Assembly: GCA_000320545.1 (NCBI GenBank)
Contig: ADNK01000771.1
Location: 1 to 41,657 of the forward strand
Source: Bigelowiella natans CCMP2755
Taxonomy: Eukaryota; Protista; Cercozoa
DNA length: 41,657 nt
Direction: 5' to 3'
Notes under the pieces: generated by a model
What the model saw: the letters and a program-made list of their open reading frames with translations, nothing else
The model's database searches: none
Told to the model about the DNA's origin: nothing
In this document: in pieces, positions 1,456 through 40,255 of the stretch
Numbering within the stretch: position 1 is the stretch's first letter
Layout: every line of letters begins with the position of its first letter
Program-made: the position numbers and the translations under genes

Positions 1456-1487
<32 letters not shown>
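1456..1487. repeat. (TA)14-TG-TA microsatellite abutting a repeat-family end
   Basis: Read directly; it is immediately followed by AGACGGATG at 1488. Confidence 0.9.
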
Positions 1488-1897
1488 AGACGGATGTAAT
1501 TAATCAATTAAATTTGCTCAATAGTTATCCTTATGTAGCTGTGCAATGCAGCGGCTAATATACATATACGATGTACACATATATTTTCGGCGACTGTTTT
1601 GGTGTATCGATCCGAATGCAGCAGCTGGCCTGTGCTATATGCATGGCAAAATGGCGTGGCACACGCATCGTAGCAACGCCCACAAAGAGCACTGGCCTAA
1701 GTAGCATATGCTGCACGAAAGGCCCTGGCCTGTATGTATGTGACCGTATTTTGTTCACACGCGCATGCCGCAGCTAGGCTAAGGCATGCACATATCTACA
1801 TATATGCAAACGCAACTTTGGCGCTGTAACCGCAGCTTTGCAGAGCTACAATAGGATGACGATTTCACGAATTTAACTTATTCATCACATCCGTCTC
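1488..1897. mobile_element. Degenerate element with two outward-facing copies of the GAGACGGATG-terminated repeat family (1488-1558 and about 1805-1897)
   Basis: 1488-1558 and the reverse complement of 1805-1897 both align by eye to 5776-5860 (GAGACGGATGTRATGAA...TCATCCYAATGTAGCTGTGCAA...GCGGCTACAGCGC). Confidence 0.7.
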
Positions 1898-2035
1898 ATA
1901 TGAATATTACATGCATGCAGGCACATACGCACGGTACAGATGTCTGCTGCAAATACCATGATATTTTAAAAAAAAATCTCATTTAGATTCCAGCTGCACG
2001 GTATTCCATCCACAATAAAACGCATATCGACACTC

Positions 2036-3020: not shown

Positions 3021-3103
<83 letters not shown>

Positions 3104-4455: not shown

Positions 4456-5397
4456 ATGGGCTGCACTTATGGCAAGGAAGGGCCTCACTCTGTAAAATGT
4501 CTGAAGATGATGGACGGTGCTAGATTTGTGACCTTCAGTCCTGAAGGAACAATTATAGCAACAGGCCAACGAGCTGATGTTCAACTTATTCCATTTGGTC
4601 GAGATTCCAAGTTGAAACGGTCGGAAAGTTTATCTGGGCATAAAAAGATTGTAACTTGCGCAGATTTTCACCCTATGAAGAGTTACGAACTTGCAAGTGG
4701 ATCTGGGGATAATTGCATAATTATTTGGGATGTGTCCAATGGACAACCTAAAAGAAAGATGATTGGACATGGACAATGGGTTTCCGCTGTAAAGTATTCG
4801 CATGAAGGGGATCGGCTGGCCTCTGCTTCGTGGGATAACTTTTGTCGGGTTTGGAACGTGGTTGACGGAACTTGCATGTTCGCGCTTTCGGGTCACACTG
4901 ATCATGTCCGTTCCATCGCGTTTTCTCCAGACAGTTCCTATCTTTTAACTGGCGCTGAGGATAGCAAATGCATTCTTTGGTCTTCGAAGGATGGAAAACT
5001 GAAGAGGACTTTTAAGCAACAACACAGTTCAGATGTGCTATGCTGCTGTTTTTCACCTTTGGGCAAGATTGCGGCCAGTTCCTCACAGGATAATACCATA
5101 CGTATTTGGAGCGTTGAGACAGGAAAATGCACGAAGACCTTACGTGGACACTCGAGCATGGTCAGAAACATCGCATTCTCCCCTGATGGACTTTCTCTGG
5201 CTTCCGCCAGTGATGATTACACAATCCGCGTTTGGAATACTAAAGATTGGACTCAACCATCGATAATAATCCGAACAAGTACCGTCAATGAGTACGTTAA
5301 GTATTCACCGGACGGAAAAACACTAGCATCTATTTCTGGAACTGACCAAGTTCGTTTATGGACCGCTCCGAAACCAATTGATTACTCAACCGTTTGA
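4456..5397 (+). CDS. WD40-repeat beta-propeller protein, single exon, 313 aa
   Basis: About 7 canonical GH...WD-type repeats (e.g. LSGHKKIVTCADFHP...LASGSGDNCIIIWD; LRGHSSMVRNIAFSPDGLSLASASDDYTIRVWN). The N-terminus is MGCTYGK. Confidence 0.92.
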   Translation: MGCTYGKEGPHSVKCLKMMDGARFVTFSPEGTIIATGQRADVQLIPFGRDSKLKRSESLSGHKKIVTCADFHPMKSYELASGSGDNCIIIWDVSNGQPKRKMIGHGQWVSAVKYSHEGDRLASASWDNFCRVWNVVDGTCMFALSGHTDHVRSIAFSPDSSYLLTGAEDSKCILWSSKDGKLKRTFKQQHSSDVLCCCFSPLGKIAASSSQDNTIRIWSVETGKCTKTLRGHSSMVRNIAFSPDGLSLASASDDYTIRVWNTKDWTQPSIIIRTSTVNEYVKYSPDGKTLASISGTDQVRLWTAPKPIDYSTV

Positions 5398-5775
5398 ATG
5401 TCTTCTTAAAGTTCCAACACCATAATCATTTGAAGATCGAATCTTTTTCGAGAAGTTATCGTACGGGAATGCGGTGTTGTTTGTGGGTATGTATGACTCA
5501 CATGCGCGTGGTAGTGATGAGGGTACATTAGAGTACTAAGTTTCTATTCTACAATACGCCATGCAAGCGAATTAACTATATCGTTACACACATTCATGTG
5601 GTACGTACACGCAGCCGTATACATGCGTCTACCGCAGCATGTGCATTGGCAGCAGTAGGCTTTTGCTAATTTATTCGTACATTAGTAGGCACGGGTGATG
5701 TACATTTCTTTTCTTGACATTTAGATTTTTATTGTAGACATAGCAATGCACACACACACACACATGTATGTGTAG

Positions 5776-6890
5776 GAGACGGATGTGATGAAATGTTCAA
5801 ATTTTTTCAATGGTCATCCCAATGTAGCTGTGCAATGCAGCGGCTACAGCGCTTAAATTGTGTCTGTTTGTTTCCTTGGTCACGTGTTGCATGCATGAAA
5901 ATGCATCGTGATTTGGTCTAGCATGTCGCGCATTGCGCGCAGCTTTGCGACTTGTTTTTTCTGCAGTTGTGAGATGCGCAGTCTCATCGTTGCGATCCAT
6001 GCTCAGAGTGTCCTTGCACCGCCGACTCAGTTTGATCACGACCAAATTGCTTGGAGCGGAACACCCTGCAACACGTGCTGCAAGCAATGTTGGAAGAATA
6101 GGCGCGGGTGGCACAGTGGCGGCAGGCACAAGCAGCGATGTGCTGCGACTTGCGTGTCGCAGGCACAGAACTCGCCTGCACTTGCAGCCTCTTGCTGCGT
6201 GCTCATCGCAGCCTGCAAACGCCCGCAGATCTCTCTGCCGTTGCAGCTGGCTGCTCAAGCAAGCACTTCGCGCGCTGAGTGCAAAGCACTCCAACAAGCA
6301 AGACACCAAAAAATGAATTGAACGCACACAACAATGAAACGATCATGCGGATCGCTGCATCCAACTTCAAAACAAACTGGTGCCAAGAGGGAACAAAGGC
6401 CATGCATTTGAAGAAACTTGGTTTCATGCCTGGCTCTCGCACAACAGGAATCACATTGAAGCTGCCAAGCATTGCCACATCATGGATGCGCGCCATCTGT
6501 GGTGTTGGCAACCTTGGAACTTTTTTGCTGTCCAGAGGACAACGCACAAAATTGGAAGCAATGTGCGACACATGCAACACATGCCAAGACATTGTGGACC
6601 ACATTCTGCAATGCAGAAAATGCGGACCACAGAGACTCAGAATCAACAAACAACTGACGGCCATCGTGGATCGCGACGATGAGACTGCGCGTCTCACAAC
6701 CGCAGAAAAAGCAACTCGCAAAGCTGCGCGCAAAGCACGACATGCTGGACCAAATCATGATGCATTTTCATGCATGCAACACGTGACCAAGGAAACAAAC
6801 AGACACAATTTGAGCGCTGTGGCCGCTGCATTGCACAGCTGCATTGGGATGACCATTGAAAAAATTTGAACATTTCATTGCATCCGTCTC
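5776..6890. mobile_element. Transposon relic with about 225-bp inverted arms (5776-6000 / 6666-6890), containing the 3' end of a non-LTR (LINE-like) ORF; almost no TpA
   Basis: The arms align without gaps, with 15 mismatches in 225 bp (hand count). Both ends read GAGACGGATG inward. The internal plus-strand frame carries a CCHC knuckle. Confidence 0.8.
6279..6869 (+). pseudogene. C-terminal fragment of a non-LTR retrotransposon ORF2 (CCHC zinc-knuckle region), hypermutated
   Basis: WMRAICGVGNLGTFLLSRGQRTKLEAMCDTCNTCQDIVDHILQCRKCGPQR resembles the LINE post-RT motif (RLRTGHxxLxxYLxRIG...CxxC-x7-8-HxxxxCxxY). There is no Tyr in 196 aa. Confidence 0.55.
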
Positions 6891-7361
6891 ATGCATGTGT
6901 GACGTGTGCCAACATCACATTGTCCATCATTTTCATGACTCGACCACGTCACATGGCAGCCGGCGCCAATGTGCGCTCACATGGTTGCGATGCTGATTGA
7001 CAATGAACATGCGGCGGCCGCCAGCATGTAGCTGCGGTGTCGTGCCACGATGCACTGGTTGATTGCCATCCAAAAGGACTCATGCATGTGCCGCATTGCA
7101 GAAAACATGTTCATGCAACCATGTCATGTGACCATGTTCACTCGAAGAAAGAAGCAAGCAAAACATGTGTCGTTTTCTGAGTCGTTGCTTACAATTTTGA
7201 AATTTGCAACAGCCATGCATGCAAGTCGTGCTAGTATGCGTACAACATGTTTACGTTATTGGGATGCGATGTAAATGAAAACGAAGCAAATATTTAGGCC
7301 ATATAGCACAGTTATGATGCAAGAGGCCTTGCAGGAACTATATTTATTACCCTCTTCATAT

Positions 7362-8267
7362 CTAGACTATAAACTCGCAAGCAAGAAACATGTGATCGGA
7401 AGGATAAAATTTACCATCAAATTTTGCATACTCCTCAGGGTTCACTAATTCCTTTGGAATGCTCCATGATTCAGTTCCCCATATGTGCGCATTGTCCGGT
7501 TGTAGGCTAAATTATAAGTATACAGAGTGCATGCAGTAAGAGGGTATGCAGCAGCAGCAGCAGCGTCTACACAGTCAGTTGGGCTTATTGTGAGGTCATT
7601 ACCCCTGTGAAAAAATGTAGTCTATTCGTGACTTTGGTGTCCAAGAGCTGAAAGTCCATCCTACACGGAAACCAGCAAGCTTAAGATAACGAGTTTGATT
7701 ATTCTGGATTGTAAACGACATATATGTGTGCATATTGCTTTGTGACGCAGTGCCCAGCAATTACACACACACACACACACACAACACACATACACATACA
7801 CAGTAACACACATACGTGATAAGTTACTACCAGCTTCAGAGGGGTTCAAGGATCGCCAGCAATCCTTGGTTTCAACATCAGTCACATATAGTTTATAGCA
7901 ATAATTTCAATACAAATCAGACCATGTATAGGAAAACTTATAAGTGCATTCCGCGAATAACTTCCAGCGCCTCAACCGACGCGATCGATGGCTTGCTATG
8001 TTTTTGTGTGAGTTATATAAAACGCCCCCCCCCCCCAAGGGAGCGGGGCCATCTTCACGAAGATGACGGTTCGGAGCACTGTCGCTGAGTGATTGATGAT
8101 TCACACCTTGAAGCCATGGCGTTGAATGAACAACGGGTCTTCCTGCTCTAAGACTGCATTAAAATCTCCAACCAATACCTGCAATCAGTCATTATCTCTT
8201 CCCAATCAGGCATCTGAAAGAGGTCAATCGTATTGCGACAGACACCCCTCTACCTACTCACCCATCC

Positions 8268-12070: not shown

Positions 12071-15000
12071 ATGGATCACATCAAAGATGTGATACAGTTC
12101 CTTGTGGGAAGAGAGGTGGGGGCTGGAGGAGGCGCAAACACGCCATTGACATCCACAATTGAATTGGTCGTTCGCTTACTCGAAGCATTTGCGCCACCAG
12201 AAGGGTCCTTTGTTCGTAGTTTTCCTGTTTTGTGCAGCGGTGTAGGTACAGTGCTCACTGTGTCAGGGTTTAGCATGTTGCGACGGTTAGGCATTCCTGT
12301 CTTGCTCGTAGTACAGACAACAGCCAAACCGCTGGCAGCTTGCTCTGCCCTGGCCAGTGGTGGTTTGCTGATGCAGCATTCTCTCTCATACACTTGGCAA
12401 ATATCACTACTTCGGTCGCTTGCCGAGCTTGTAGCAGGAACCGGTCTATTTGCAGGAGGTGTCATCCTTTCACAGCCACTCGGAGGCTTATTGAGGATGA
12501 GTCCTTCCAAGGTTACTGGAGCTACCTTGTGTGCGAACGGCTGTTTTGCCACCGCGGCTTTTGTGGACGTCGCTCTAAGAATGCGCACAGCAGGGAGAAG
12601 CTCAACAGGAATCGCCCTCGCCTCATTAGCAGCCTATGTCATAGGGTTGCAAACAGCTGTTGGGATCGAGATGGTAGCAGAAGTACACGTACTCAGACCC
12701 ATGGTTTACAGAGCTATTCAATGTATATCCCGACTTGGGGGTCTTGCAGCACGGGGCATCTCCAGAACGGTATGCATGTTGATGGATATTACCATGAAAT
12801 CACTTCGATTTGTGTGGCAAAAGCTCGTCAAACCTGTCGGAAGCGCACTGATATCAATACTCGGTTCGCTTTGGAGAACCGTAGTGAAGCCTGTGTTGAT
12901 ATTCCTGAAAAATGCGATAGTAAAGATCTTTACGTGTCTATACAAGGCCCTCGACTACACACTTAATACCGCTATCAGCCTGGCCGGTTTGCTTTGGAGA
13001 ACCGTAGTGAAGCCTGTGTTGATGTTCCTGAAAAATGCGGTAGTAAAGATCTTTACGTGTCTATACAAGGTCCTCGACTACACACTTAGAACCGCTAGCA
13101 GCCTGGCAAATATCTTATGGCGATCGATTCTTAAACCCGTGTTGACTATCATAGCGGACATAGCGTCGGAGGGCTATGCTGCAATGCGAGACGGTCTCAT
13201 ATACACGTTTAGGGTTATTGCGAGAGTGAGCAGTTACTTGTGGAGTTCCATCATCAGACCCACCCTTACCACCGTAGCGAATGTGGTGGGTAGAGTCTGG
13301 AGCTGGTTATCGAGACGATGTACCCAGATTTGCAATGTGGCTTGGACTGCGATTCTCAGGCCTCTATTCAGAGCAGTAACAAACGTTGCTGTCGAAGGAA
13401 CGCGACTACTCTGGCAGGGACTCAGAAACGCTCTGGCTGCTACTCAGGTGTAATAAGTATATGCTTGCAACCAGCGCTCATAATAACGTTGTCACTAGAA
13501 GTATTTGGCAATCAATACTCCACTATGTATTTGGGTTATAACCTAGCGATATACTCGAATGATGAGGAATCCTCTCTTACTCACATACCGTTTGAATTTT
13601 CAGAGATTCGGCCGAGAATTCATGCGGATGACAACGTATCTTTCTGCCAAACTCTTTCGACTCGCAAGCCGTGTTGTGCGCCTCTTGAAACGCTGGGTAG
13701 TGATTCCGGTGACGAAGTTCCTCAGCAAAGCGCTGCGATTCGGACTTGTCGTCGCTTGGCCAACGTTAATGTCAGCCATCTCTACCAAATTCATTTACTC
13801 AGCGTACTCCGCCGAGGGATTTGCCTCGAGGTTATGCTTTTCACTAGCTGCCGTCTCCTCAATCTCAGCCTCATTATGCCTTATCGGCAGAGCTGTGGTA
13901 CATTGCTGCAGATCTCTCCCTGCCATTAATGTCCTTTTCCCCTTGCGGCACCAGTACCTGCTAGAGGATGCATTCTCTTCCTGGGGTCGAAGATTGAGTT
14001 CGCTGGGTACTTGGGTCATCCTCCGTCAGGATGCGTTTGTGCTGGATTTGCTCTTCTACGCTACTTACATCTCGATATCCACCTGCCGAGATATCACAGC
14101 AGCGTTGGCTTCTTTGCTTCGCAAGGCGTTCGACCACCTTCACAACATCTTGGCCAACACTGCGAGAGGGATATACCGTCTCTCGACGTACATCTTCTCG
14201 GTTTTCTGGGGGGCAATGAGGCGTGTTGCAAACGTGGTCTTTAGGGCGTTACTGTTCATCTGGGAAGAGCCTGTTTTATCGTCCACCTGCTCGTGTATTG
14301 CCCTGGCGTCTGTGTACTTGCTATGGTCAGGGCGCCTGCAGCTGCCGCCTTTAGTGACCAGCTCAGTGCTCAAACTCTACGGGAGCATCACCTCCGACAT
14401 TCCCAAATATGCCTGGCGAAGTGCTGATGATCTTTTCATGTTGTTGCGACGTTTTTTCTCGTCTGACCTGCCAGCGATGCTTTCAACCAGCGCCGCTGCG
14501 GCGACTGCATCTCTCCGCGCACCGTGGATACGTTGCAAGGACCTCTCCAAGAGATTTTACAATTTGGACGCCATGTCGCACTTCGAAAACGCTCGATTCG
14601 CATCTGCAGTCTATGTAATTATGACGACAAGTGCTAGGGTAGCCTCCTTGGGGAGTCGCTTGAACGACGAAACCGTCGCGGCAGTGACTGTCACCGTGGC
14701 GGGGATGACGAAAGCTATTTTCCTGCCTGTGCTCGTCCTCGGATCGATTTCTAGATTCGGTGGGGCTGCCGCTGTATTAGCTGGCGAGTTTATTGCGGCG
14801 CCAATCAGTGTTATCTACGTCGGAACCACCCTCGTCGCTCTTCTTTACGAGCTACACCAACGGAGAAGCGGTCGTGGTGAACAAGGCCTACGTCGCAGGG
14901 CAGCACCAGTACATCCCTCTGCAGGTTTTCGAAGAAGTGTTGAAGAAAAGAAAGGATCCATCCTAAAGAACCTCCCCGAACCTGTTCGCATCTACTACAA

Positions 15001-15310
15001 TGCAAATTGCATCATTTGCTCGGACCCAATCGGAATAGACGAGAATGAGGCCAAGCTGATTCTCAAGGCCGAACGAATCCAAGTAACGAATTCTAAAAAC
15101 TCCATGGGCAATACCGTAGAAGGAAAGCAAAAGGAGGCAGAAAGTTCAGCGAAGACGGTGGAACAGAAACCGGTGAAACAACCGGTGCATGCCCTTCCTT
15201 GTGGACATATTTTTCACGCGGTCTGCATCACTCAATGGCTTGCTGTCAAATCTAGGTGTCCACTTTGTCTTCGAGACGTCAATCCGGGTATCAGCACGTT
15301 CCTGCTCTGA
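12071..15310 (+). CDS. Multi-pass membrane protein with C-terminal RING-H2 finger (putative E3 ligase), 2 exons (12071-13447, 13547-15310), about 1046 aa
   Basis: Two long ORFs are joined in frame by a 99-bp intron (CAG|gtgtaa...acctag|CGA). The C-terminus reads CIIC...LPCGHIFHAVCITQWLAVKSRCPLC, and there are many hydrophobic segments. Confidence 0.85.
12868..13113 (+). repeat. In-frame tandem duplication, 123 bp (41 aa) x2
   Basis: Units start at 12868 and 12991 (GCTTTGGAGAACCGTAGTGAAGCC...), encoding LWRTVVKPVL(I/M)FLKNA(I/V)VKIFTCLYK(A/V)LDYTL. Confidence 0.95.
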
Positions 15311-15439: not shown

Positions 15440-15664
15440 CACAATGGGAGAACATTTTTTCAATTGTCATCCTAATGTAGCTGTGCACAGAGGCGGCAAC
15501 AGCGCTAAGATTGTGTTTGTTTGTTTCAGCAATTACGTGCTTTATGTTTGCAAATTCTACATAATGTGTGACACAGATGTAATGAATATATTAGATTTCT
15601 TCAATTGTCATCCTAATGCAGCTATACAAAGCTGCGGCTACAGCGAACTGCATTGGTTTGTTTC
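15440..15664 (-). mobile_element. Two tandem degenerate copies of the same repeat-family end (about 15440-15528 and about 15574-15664)
   Basis: Both contain TTCAATTGTCATCCTAATG(T/C)AGCT...GCGGC(A/T)ACAGCG, matching 5800-5850. Minus-strand translations are SAVAASVHSYIRMTIEK and AVAAALYSCIRMTIEEI*. Confidence 0.75.
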
Positions 15665-24416: not shown

Positions 24417-26178
24417 ATGGGAGAAGAAAAAAAGTCATCGAAGAATATCGGATTCGGAAAGCTCATCCTATTTGGAGAGCACTTCGTTGTTTACAAGGTG
24501 CGCAAATCAGAGGTATACCTCTGCATACTCGCTAACACATTCGTCACTACAGGTGCCTGCTCTGGTTGCAGCCGTCAAGGCAGCCACTGAATGCAAAGTG
24601 GAGGTGAGGAATGTTAGTTGCAGCTTCAAGTGTCGGTGTACTAATAGATTTTACATTTTTTATATTTCTGTTTCCAGCTATCTTCTAAGACAACCGAATC
24701 TGAAGATGGGGCCTGGTCAAGTGGGCTACTGGTAATCCATTTACGATAATATTAATTTTATTCGGATGATATCTTCCACGCCAGCTGCTGTATCTCCATC
24801 GAGGAGGATAAAAGAAGGGGTGTGTGTGTGTGTGCTAGGTGGCGTGGCTACGATATTACCTCAAGTATTTTCTTCATATTCTAGATTGAGGACAATCGCC
24901 CAGCAGTCCCCGGATACAAGCGCAAGAAACGTGATGAAATGATTGAGGTTCTTGTCTCCGATAACAACCTTGTTGGTGTCAAACTTCTATCTCTTTGGAA
25001 TGAGAAAAAAGGAAACCTTTCGGCATATCTAATTTATTCTCTCTCCCTCGCTCTCTCTCTCTCAGGCAACCAAACTGGTTCTTAAGCACTTCAAGGTTGA
25101 CCACGAGAAGCGAGGAGTGAAGGTGTGCTTCCCTGCCGTACCTCTAATTAAATACTTATCGCTTTGCAAAGCGCTTGAGAAACCCAAATCCAAGAATAAA
25201 TCATTTCCAAATTGACATGGAATCATCACGTGAACCAGATCACCTTGGGCGGAGATTTGTGCGCGGTATCTGGAATTGGAGCGTCTGCGAGCAATGCTGT
25301 GTCGTTGTCTCGTGCCCTGGCTGATGCGCTTGGTTGCACCACACACACAAACACACGCACAAACATACACACACATAACCTGGCATACATATGTACTATG
25401 TGTGCTTGAGGAAACAATTCTATTAAAGACTTTCGTGCATTTGATACCAAGTTCATGCGATGTTCCTATTTTCATATTCCATTCAATATTTTGGCGATGA
25501 CAGGCATGGAGCTGACAGAGGAAGAAATCAATCGTGCAGGCTATGAGGGCGAGAAGGTATTAGTAATAGTAGTACATCTTCTAGTTCTACTGGGATGGGA
25601 ACGTGACAACTTCATGTGACATGTAGCAGCATGATTGCTAAAGTGTGTTTCGTCTACTCGTTTTTGTTTGCTGAGTAGGGCTACCACGGCACTCCTTCCG
25701 GCATCGACAACACCGCTGCCACATATGGAGGGGTTCTTAGCTTCTGTCGCACGGTCCGTTACCCTGATACGTGTAAGAAATAGGGGGAGGGAGTCAGTGT
25801 CAAAGGCATAGTCTGGCCACTCAATTCTCTAACTATTAAAAGAAGAATGTTTTTTCTCATCCATTCTGTAATCATCGTCTCCTGAGCGTGGTACCGACCC
25901 TTCCTGCTTCTCGTAAATGCTACCATTGTCATACTTTCCACCTGACGAAGTCTTTTTTGTTCTCTTTATTCAATATTTGCAATGTGCTTCCATTCGGCCG
26001 TAAATCAGGACGGAGATCCTAAATTCGAAATCAAAAAGTCAGTAATAATACACATGCGGAATATTCATGATTTATATGCATGTTTGTCATCGTCGTACGT
26101 GCCAGCTGGTTGCTTTGACTTATGTTTCTTCCGGTTCGCTGTATTTTTCTCTATTTCTTCGGTGCTTTGTTGCATATA

Positions 26179-26215
<37 letters not shown>

Positions 26216-39925: not shown

Positions 39926-40223
39926 TCTCCCTCCTCTTTCTCTCTCTCGCACACACGGATATTGATTATCTGTGTGTGTAGGCGTGCATGCTTACCATGA
40001 ATCTGCGATCACGGCTAAATGCTTGCTACTGTGCTAAGGAGGCTTCTAGCACCGCGGCAGTACTCAAACGGCAAATGACGACGACAACAACATACTACTA
40101 CTGGTACTGCATGAACCTTTCTCCGGAAGGATCAACCCAGGGAGAGATCAGGATCAACCCATCTGCAGATCTTAAGCTTTCTTCTTGCGCACGGAGTAGA
40201 ACTGCAACCGACAGCCCTCCTGC

Positions 40224-40255
<32 letters not shown>

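Follow-up and report, generated by a model that had tools for sequence, protein, structure and literature searches.

Polarised loss of TpA dinucleotides in two head-to-head retrotransposon copies of Bigelowiella natans

The system closest to the one treated here has been described in Bigelowiella natans itself. In a mutation-accumulation experiment with strain RCC623 (Mettrop et al., version April 2026; bioRxiv 10.64898/2026.01.13.699255), 230 of 231 de novo single-nucleotide mutations in integrated giant-virus and virophage regions were A>G or T>C, nearly all of them at TpA, and the mutation rate in the affected regions was approximately 1000 times the genomic background. The process acts on single-copy, transcriptionally silent DNA, and an ADAT2-like candidate deaminase, Bn78255, has been named. 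Affected regions are recognised by rho TpA <= 0.43 together with rho CpA+TpG >= 1.52, a cluster being defined as at least three consecutive 1-kb windows. Furthermore, 324 low-TpA coding sequences were reported, enriched in reverse transcriptase, endonuclease-RT and DDE domains. The direct evidence in that study comes from the giant-virus and virophage regions, whereas retrotransposons are implicated by Pfam enrichment only. The conversion of TpA to TpG/CpA in B. natans, and its direction, are accordingly already known from this 2026 preprint.

Outside B. natans, RIP of Neurospora and other fungi likewise produces dinucleotide-specific transitions that disable transposons, leaves compositional islands and leaks into flanking sequence. 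RIP changes CpA to TpA by C>T and enriches TpA, whereas at the locus described below TpA is destroyed (A>G / T>C). Moreover, RIP needs duplicated sequence and hits both copies, whereas here one near-identical copy has been largely spared, and the published B. natans targets include single-copy DNA. Deaminase hypermutation of repeats is also known from ADAR hyper-editing and from APOBEC3. ADAR makes A>G changes with a preference for a 5' U, and inverted repeats like the arms described below are its classic substrate, but it acts on RNA and belongs to metazoans, whereas the present record lies in genomic DNA and, at the family level, on both strands. APOBEC3, which edits retroelement cDNA, makes C>U changes, seen as G>A. 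The genomic record here also reaches a flank that does not look transcribed.

The window, a stretch of 41,657 nt from B. natans CCMP2755 (contig ADNK01000771.1), has a GC content of 0.4485 and a TpA content of 5.9%, compared to the preprint's B. natans values of 0.449 and 6.0%. An unbiased repeat search returned an inverted repeat at 5771-5999 / 6667-6895 (229 nt, 93% complementary, spacing 667 nt), which is the single inverted pair found over 4500-8200. Base-by-base comparison of 5776-6000 with 6890-6666 gave 15 mismatches in 225 positions. Two of these are transversions (5932 and 5951) and 13 are transitions (5786, 5787, 5825, 5845, 5854, 5908, 5919, 5929, 5955, 5965, 5975, 5991 and 6000), all but the one at 5955, that is 12/13, lying in YR dinucleotides. 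The left arm contains four TpA (5825, 5845, 5854 and 5919) and the right arm none; at all four positions the reverse-complemented right arm reads CA. Six differences oppose CG to TG/CA (5908, 5929, 5965, 5975, 5991 and 6000). At 5786-87 the left arm reads TG and the reverse-complemented right arm CA, whereas the copies elsewhere in the window at 1497-98 and 15580-81 read TA. This pattern is far beyond chance. The original prediction had given the same counts of mismatches, transitions and YR sites, the same four TA/CA sites, the same states at 5786-87 (with the second TA placed at about 15580) and the same six CG differences, five of which have now been polarised; all were reproduced exactly.

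The arms are copies of the 3' end of a non-LTR retrotransposon with a (TA)n tail; both are 5'-truncated, and they lie head-to-head, meeting at about 6000-6004 (Table 1). In BLAST comparisons with the metagenomic relative L004, homology of the left copy (minus strand) extends to 6004 and that of the right copy (plus strand) begins at 6004. Positions 1773-2004 of L004 match 6004-5773 of the window (90.5%), while its positions 1335-1409 align with 6004-6078 and 1409-2003 with 6291-6892. The 212 GC-rich nt between the latter two blocks (6079-6290) are missing from L004, whose frame is uninterrupted there, and are either an insertion in the right copy or a variable region. The only TpA of the right copy, at 6099, is found within these extra 212 nt; its element-homologous part contains none. 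The body of the element ends in CATCCGTCTC, followed by the (TA)n tail. The relatives L001 and L003 and the window copy at 1488-1557 also end in CCGTCTC followed by (TA)n, the tails of L001 and L003 reading ATATAT.

Table 1. Coordinates of the two retrotransposon copies, their surroundings and the short family copies in the window
Feature	Position	Strand	Description
Left copy (L), 3' tail	5747..5775	-	In-phase TA/CA/TG mosaic, no CG; read as partly converted (TA)n
Left copy (L)	5776..6004	-	5'-truncated 3' end: last ~68 codons, TGA stop, ~20-nt UTR ending CCGTCTC
Right copy (R)	6004..6890	+	~670 nt of the element's 3' part plus 212 extra nt (6079-6290)
Open frame in right copy	6279..6872	+	196 aa plus TGA stop; C-terminal region of the element's ORF2
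Right copy (R), 3' tail	6891..6908	+	A TG CA TG TG TG ...; read as converted (TA)n
Right flank	6909..7190		No homology to the element; nearly TpA-free
Short family copy (3' end)	1456..1557	-	Body 1488-1557; TAA stop; TA at the site homologous to 5786-87
Short family copy (3' end)	1807..1901	+	TAA stop; CA at the site homologous to 5786-87
Two adjoining short family copies (3' end)	15454-15546, 15569-15645	-	Second copy: TA at 15580-81, TAA stop

The assignment to non-LTR (LINE-like) retrotransposons follows from an RVT_1 domain in the L004 ORF, from copies of 70-890 nt that share their 3' end and from the (TA)n tail. The RVT_1 domain (E = 7.6e-17) is located in a 633-aa frame of L004, whose protein is 85% identical; L004 is the one locus returned by a metagenome scan with a four-sequence alignment, and the sequence examined starts inside the RT domain. 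The open frame of the right copy contains a CxxC...H...C knuckle and not a single tyrosine. In database searches it comes closest to the B. natans model Bigna1|71843 (85% identity), while relatives in ENA reach 55-63%; a Pfam search with the same frame brought up no meaningful domain, baeRF_family2 (E = 0.017) falling short of the cut-off. The combination of an ORF2 encoding RT with a Cys/His knuckle at its C-terminus is shared with microsatellite-tailed or microsatellite-targeting non-LTR retrotransposons. Bigna1|71843 is listed in Tables S6 and S8 of the preprint (bioRxiv 10.64898/2026.01.13.699255), and this homolog together with the RVT_1 domain of L004 identifies the target as foreign or mobile DNA. 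The four further short pieces in the window have only the last 70-95 nt in common, and such sharing of the 3' end is what 5' truncation of non-LTR retrotransposons produces.

Microsatellite-tailed or microsatellite-targeting non-LTR retrotransposons and L1 twin priming likewise show 5' truncation, simple-repeat 3' tails and inverted insertion junctions. In L1 twin priming the inverted piece is copied from a region farther upstream on one and the same RNA, whereas both pieces here are 3' ends, each carrying its own tail. This would imply two priming events, and we infer that they took place, simultaneously or successively, at one palindromic (TA)n target. An origin of the arms by DNA fold-back, or by any DNA-level inverted duplication, was considered and rejected, as the arms are distal ends and each is followed by its own outward-pointing tail. 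The original prediction had placed the mutation in the genome after duplication. The duplication part of that claim has to be given up, since the arms are two retrotransposon insertions; mutation in place after the two copies had split is plausible. Should the two copies have been inserted independently, from different source copies, the R-specific hits could predate insertion.

The tails differ in their state. The 14 YR units in the tail of the left copy comprise eight CA, four TG and two TA. The short copy at 1488-1557 retains an intact (TA)14-15 tail at 1456-1487, and this copy serves as an unmutated internal control. Long perfect (TA)n microsatellites are also found at 3026-3102, 26171-26212 and 40221-40248; one of them adjoins (TG)16, and TGCA precedes two of them. 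They may represent further targets of the (TA)n-tailed family or tails left by it.

The right copy is located in a pronounced compositional island. The interval 6001-7000 contains a single TpA (o/e 0.02) and has a CpA+TpG o/e of 1.83, while 5920-7190 (1.27 kb) contains two TpA compared to 74 expected from base composition, or 57 from the usual TpA ratio of the window. The TpA-free gap at 6099-7029 is 930 nt long, the median gap being 10 nt (P ~1e-21). [quoted passage not shown] The composition signature is thus the one described by Mettrop et al., with rho TpA of 0.02 and rho CpA+TpG of 1.83 in the island, although the 1.3-kb island falls short of their cluster definition of three consecutive 1-kb windows. 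Depletion runs about 280 nt beyond the right copy: 6896-7190 (295 nt) contains one TpA, together with 39 TG and 36 CA, whereas neighbouring normal flanks have 33-34 TpA in 341-410 nt. This right flank could, however, belong to an older element that was mutated separately, and would then not speak for action in place. Perfect (TA)12-22 microsatellites are intact elsewhere in the window, indicating that the process is regional and not genome-wide.

Some further features of the window and its relatives are recorded here. [quoted passage not shown] The interval 4456-5397, some 400 nt upstream of the left copy, encodes an intact 313-aa WD40 beta-propeller frame starting MGC; its TpA o/e of ~0.55 looks like ordinary coding depletion and not like the island signature. 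A protein search with this frame brought up WD40 matches of a generic kind, and exact look-ups with this protein and with P0001 yielded no entry. The ORF at 12071-13453, a 460-aa frame, contains a 123-nt tandem duplication at 12862-13107 (94% identity), such that the hydrophobic protein carries a 41-residue segment twice. It is adjoined by a 583-aa frame at 13559-15310 that ends in a RING-like Cys/His motif. In L004, the flank at 1990-2195 is packed with GCTAGCTAGC repeats, and this CTAG-rich sequence persists beside the TpA-depleted ORF (o/e 0.15-0.26).

Seven TpA survive in or beside the island. Six of them (5773, 5825, 5845, 5919, 6099 and 7029) are in TAG/CTA contexts, three in TGTAGC, and the seventh (5854) is in a TTAA context. 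In Table S2 of the preprint, A>G in T-A-G is rare (four events), while T>C in C-T-A occurred about 17 times (bioRxiv 10.64898/2026.01.13.699255). A protective TAG context was considered and discarded, as the right copy's own hits include TAG sites; nothing firm follows from these contexts.

The differences between the arms were polarised using L004 as the close outgroup and L001-L003 as distant ones (L001 and L002 for the arm differences). The comparison is based on nine copies instead of a family tree for the whole genome, and six of these copies measure 70-95 nt. L and R differ from each other at 17 positions, and from L004 at 22 and 30; they are each other's closest relatives, which makes L004 a valid close outgroup. 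The ancestor of L and R reconstructed in this way had five TpA in the arm. R has lost all five, L has lost one and retains four. The losses on the R branch (6747, 6812, 6821, 6841 and 6880) are all TA>TG on the sense (+) strand, and the tail of R has one further TpA change at 6893. The loss on the L branch, at window coordinate 5787, is TA>CA in the sense of L. Changes from CA or TG to TA number zero on the R, L and L004 branches and on the stem. TpA sites on the R branch were hit in excess of other A/T sites (Fisher p = 1.3e-4). A point against a TpA-specific process is that four AT>GC changes on this branch fall outside TpA (two in CpA, one in TpG and one in ApA).

The individual sites agree with this polarity. 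At 5825 and 5845, TA is found in L004 and in both distant outgroups; at 5854 it is found in L004 and L001, L002 reading TT; at 5919 it is found in L004 only, L001 and L002 reading CG. At 5786-87 the nine copies show TA three times, CA five times, TG once and CG never. This count bears on the statement in the original prediction that only a TA ancestor explains the states at this site in one step each. That statement was too strong, since a CG ancestor would do so equally; it is the lack of CG in all nine copies that excludes the latter. At the protein level, a tyrosine (TAC) in L, P0001, P0002 and P0003 has become cysteine (TGC) in R. The 5919 site encodes arginine in L and in the distant relatives P0002/P0003 and glycine (GGA) in R; glycine is also found in P0001, where it is read as a recurrent hit. 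Four copies terminate with TAA, the depleted ones with TGA. The direction from TA to TG/CA that had been predicted is therefore supported both by outgroup polarisation and by the published mutation-accumulation experiment. The prediction had set this direction against a history with TA arising on terminal branches, or with no excess of change at TpA. The shallow branches show no TA gain and the R branch shows the TpA excess of p = 1.3e-4, within a set of nine copies whose deepest node is ambiguous.

At the level of the family, the TpA o/e is 0.73 in L001, which has a normal composition, 0.31-0.34 in the partly depleted L002 and L003, and 0.15-0.32 in the L004 ORF. Over 530 aligned nt, L001 has 35 TpA, none of which is kept in R, where TG is found at 13 and CA at 10 of these sites; the dinucleotides AT, AA and TT are 39-47% conserved over the same stretch. 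Fitch parsimony is ambiguous at the deepest node and places 14 CA/TG>TA changes on the L001 branch. Deep-node parsimony was abandoned as a test of polarity, being ambiguous under saturated parallel losses, and was replaced by a test of TG-versus-CA discordance. If an ancestral TA is lost independently, two depleted lineages should often disagree, one having TG and the other CA. The two depleted lineages disagreed at 5/16 sites with TA in L001, compared to 2/78 control sites (p = 0.0013). Conversely, none of the 78 sites with CA or TG in L001 has TA in R or L002. The discordance, which is the sole argument on this point, argues that the apparent gains on the L001 branch would be parallel TA losses elsewhere.

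Three of the six CG-versus-TG/CA differences between the arms are CpG gains on R (6666 and 6675, CA>CG; 6701, TG>CG), and read strand-symmetrically all three are CpA>CpG. The differences at 6737 (on R) and 5975 (on L) represent ordinary loss of CpG, and that at 5908 is polarised neither way. With two CpG losses and three gains among the 15 differences, and a CpG o/e of 0.81 in the island compared to 0.85 in the window, the arms do not have the character of CpG methylation decay. In Table S2 of the preprint, T>C occurs three times within A-T-G (bioRxiv 10.64898/2026.01.13.699255), such that rare CpA>CpG changes are found in both data sets. We read these changes as rare off-target hits that may become visible once TpA is exhausted, CpA being a putative minor secondary target.

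The strand on which the hits lie requires separate consideration. The five hits of R and the one of L that followed their split are all A>G on the + strand of the window (binomial p = 0.03), and the arms show no hits on both strands because their inverted orientation places all six on the + strand as A>G. The original prediction that mutation hits both strands thus does not hold for the arms (6/6 A>G on +), but it does hold for the family (13 TG to 10 CA) and for the published de novo data. A hand count in Table S2 of the preprint of neighbouring mutations within 1 kb in the same line gave approximately 22 same-strand and 19 opposite-strand pairs. A strand-coherent, processive deamination was rejected on this ground, as ~22 versus 19 pairs amounts to no coherence. 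The bias of six out of six towards the + strand is probably chance.

Taken together, we consider it very likely that a regional mutator acting at the DNA level on TpA, giving TpG or CpA, produced the present state of the locus, most TpA having been lost before L and R split, after which R lost five and L one. The mutator published for B. natans acts on certain regions of foreign or transposon DNA, where it turns TpA into TpG or CpA, presumably by deaminating adenine, a 5' T being strongly and a 5' C weakly preferred. The common source of L and R had already been stripped of most of its TpA. After divergence, R lost its remaining five TpA and had its (TA)n tail scrambled, while L lost one; R now sits in a 1.3-kb TpA-free island that extends into non-homologous flank. 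The anatomy of the copies, the polarity of the changes and their specificity for TpA are observed at this locus. That the hits after the split occurred in place, that the two copies arose at one (TA)n target and that the enzyme is a deaminase is inferred. That the process acts on DNA, and at what rate de novo, is taken from the preprint (bioRxiv 10.64898/2026.01.13.699255). Calculated from its numbers, the rate in active regions is ~1.1e-5 per TpA per generation, corresponding to a half-life of ~6e4 generations, which readily accounts for complete erasure of TpA. The hypermutation of Mettrop et al. and the changes reported here have the same target (TpA), the same products (TpG/CpA) and the same direction. 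Furthermore, their low-TpA gene lists, in which reverse transcriptase is over-represented, contain Bigna1|71843, to which the element is most closely related. What the paired copies add is a polarised natural record on an evolutionary timescale, with unequal fates of two copies located ~1 kb apart.

The opposite direction would be taken by a RIP-like process or by deamination of methyl-cytosine, with CA, TG or CG ancestral and TA gained by C-to-T change in the left arm and in the TA-rich relatives. Nine of the 13 transitions do have T in the left arm and C in the right, as RIP of the left arm predicts, a CG ancestor would yield the states at 5786-87 in one step each, and deep-node parsimony gives the 14 CA/TG>TA changes on the L001 branch. 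However, the outgroups have TA at the four left-arm sites (5825 and 5845 in L004 and both distant relatives, 5854 in L004 and L001, 5919 in L004 only), CG is absent from 5786-87 in all copies, and the conservation of Tyr, Arg and the TAA stop favours TA. The discordance of 5/16 versus 2/78 can arise only through a TA intermediate. The island shows no depletion of CpG (o/e 0.81), CpG losses make up only 2/15 differences, and de novo mutations in B. natans go from TA to TG/CA (bioRxiv 10.64898/2026.01.13.699255). Nor is the signature of fungal-type RIP found, with a TpA o/e of 0.02, a CpA+TpG o/e of 1.83 and no CA>TA change on R, L, L004 or the stem. On this evidence a RIP-like origin appears largely refuted and is very improbable. 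Selection on the element instead of a mutator, for example to avoid UA-cleaving RNases or TAA/TAG stops, is also conceivable in principle. Avoidance of UpA is common in RNA viruses and in mRNAs, and without TA two of the three stop codons vanish and open frames become longer in all six frames. Such selection would nevertheless have to explain why the non-coding tails and the non-homologous flank are depleted to the same degree, why the losses alter conserved residues (Tyr to Cys, Arg to Gly) and why a 5'-truncated dead copy, which is beyond such selection, was affected at all. With a mutational origin directly demonstrated (bioRxiv 10.64898/2026.01.13.699255), we regard selection as an extremely improbable explanation.

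A stronger competitor concerns not the direction but the time and the substrate of the changes in R. These may have been made before integration, either by A-to-I editing of the element's RNA (ADAR-like, with a 5' U) or by mutation of another source copy. The sense strand of the R branch has nine A>G and one T>C, with 5' neighbours T (six), C (two) and A (one), the transitions on the L004 branch are A>G only (seven to zero), TG on the sense strand is the commoner product in both tails, and the arms are products of retrotransposition and not of DNA duplication. Part of this bias is explained by the A-rich coding strand (202 A versus 108 T). Furthermore, the TpA-free state extends for ~280 nt into flanking DNA that lacks homology to the element and contains TG and CA in about the same number, the older shared losses lie on both strands (13 TG to 10 CA), the hit on the left copy is T>C in the sense of that copy, and the published process acts on single-copy, transcriptionally silent DNA (bioRxiv 10.64898/2026.01.13.699255). 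An origin of the R changes before integration is thus unlikely, and the regional DNA-level mutator is preferred.

Within this preferred reading, the two copies bear on how the mutator finds its target. Although near-identical and only ~1 kb apart, R has lost 5/5 and L 1/5 of their shared ancestral TpA (Fisher p = 0.048, a small sample). This unequal loss, together with the TpA-free flank, gives a hint of positional targeting. It is possible, and we put it forward tentatively, that targeting is set by position, such as a bounded chromatin or transcription domain, and not by homology. A domain boundary inside the left arm at ~5920 was considered and dropped, since the ancestor of L and R was without TpA in 5920-5999 and the stretch is uninformative. 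Given the published rate in active regions, the surviving TpA of the left copy would imply a rate that is orders of magnitude lower there. If the positional reading is true, the mechanism would part from that of RIP, and paired copies of this kind would serve as natural probes of domain boundaries.

With a mutator that specifically removes TpA from invading DNA, a form of eukaryotic genome defence has newly come to light that is opposite in direction to fungal RIP. The locus described here adds an independent confirmation of this direction drawn from sequence only, on an evolutionary timescale and in a retrotransposon instead of a virus. It also adds evidence that CpA may be a minor secondary target of the B. 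natans process, and a hint that the mutator may be directed by position.
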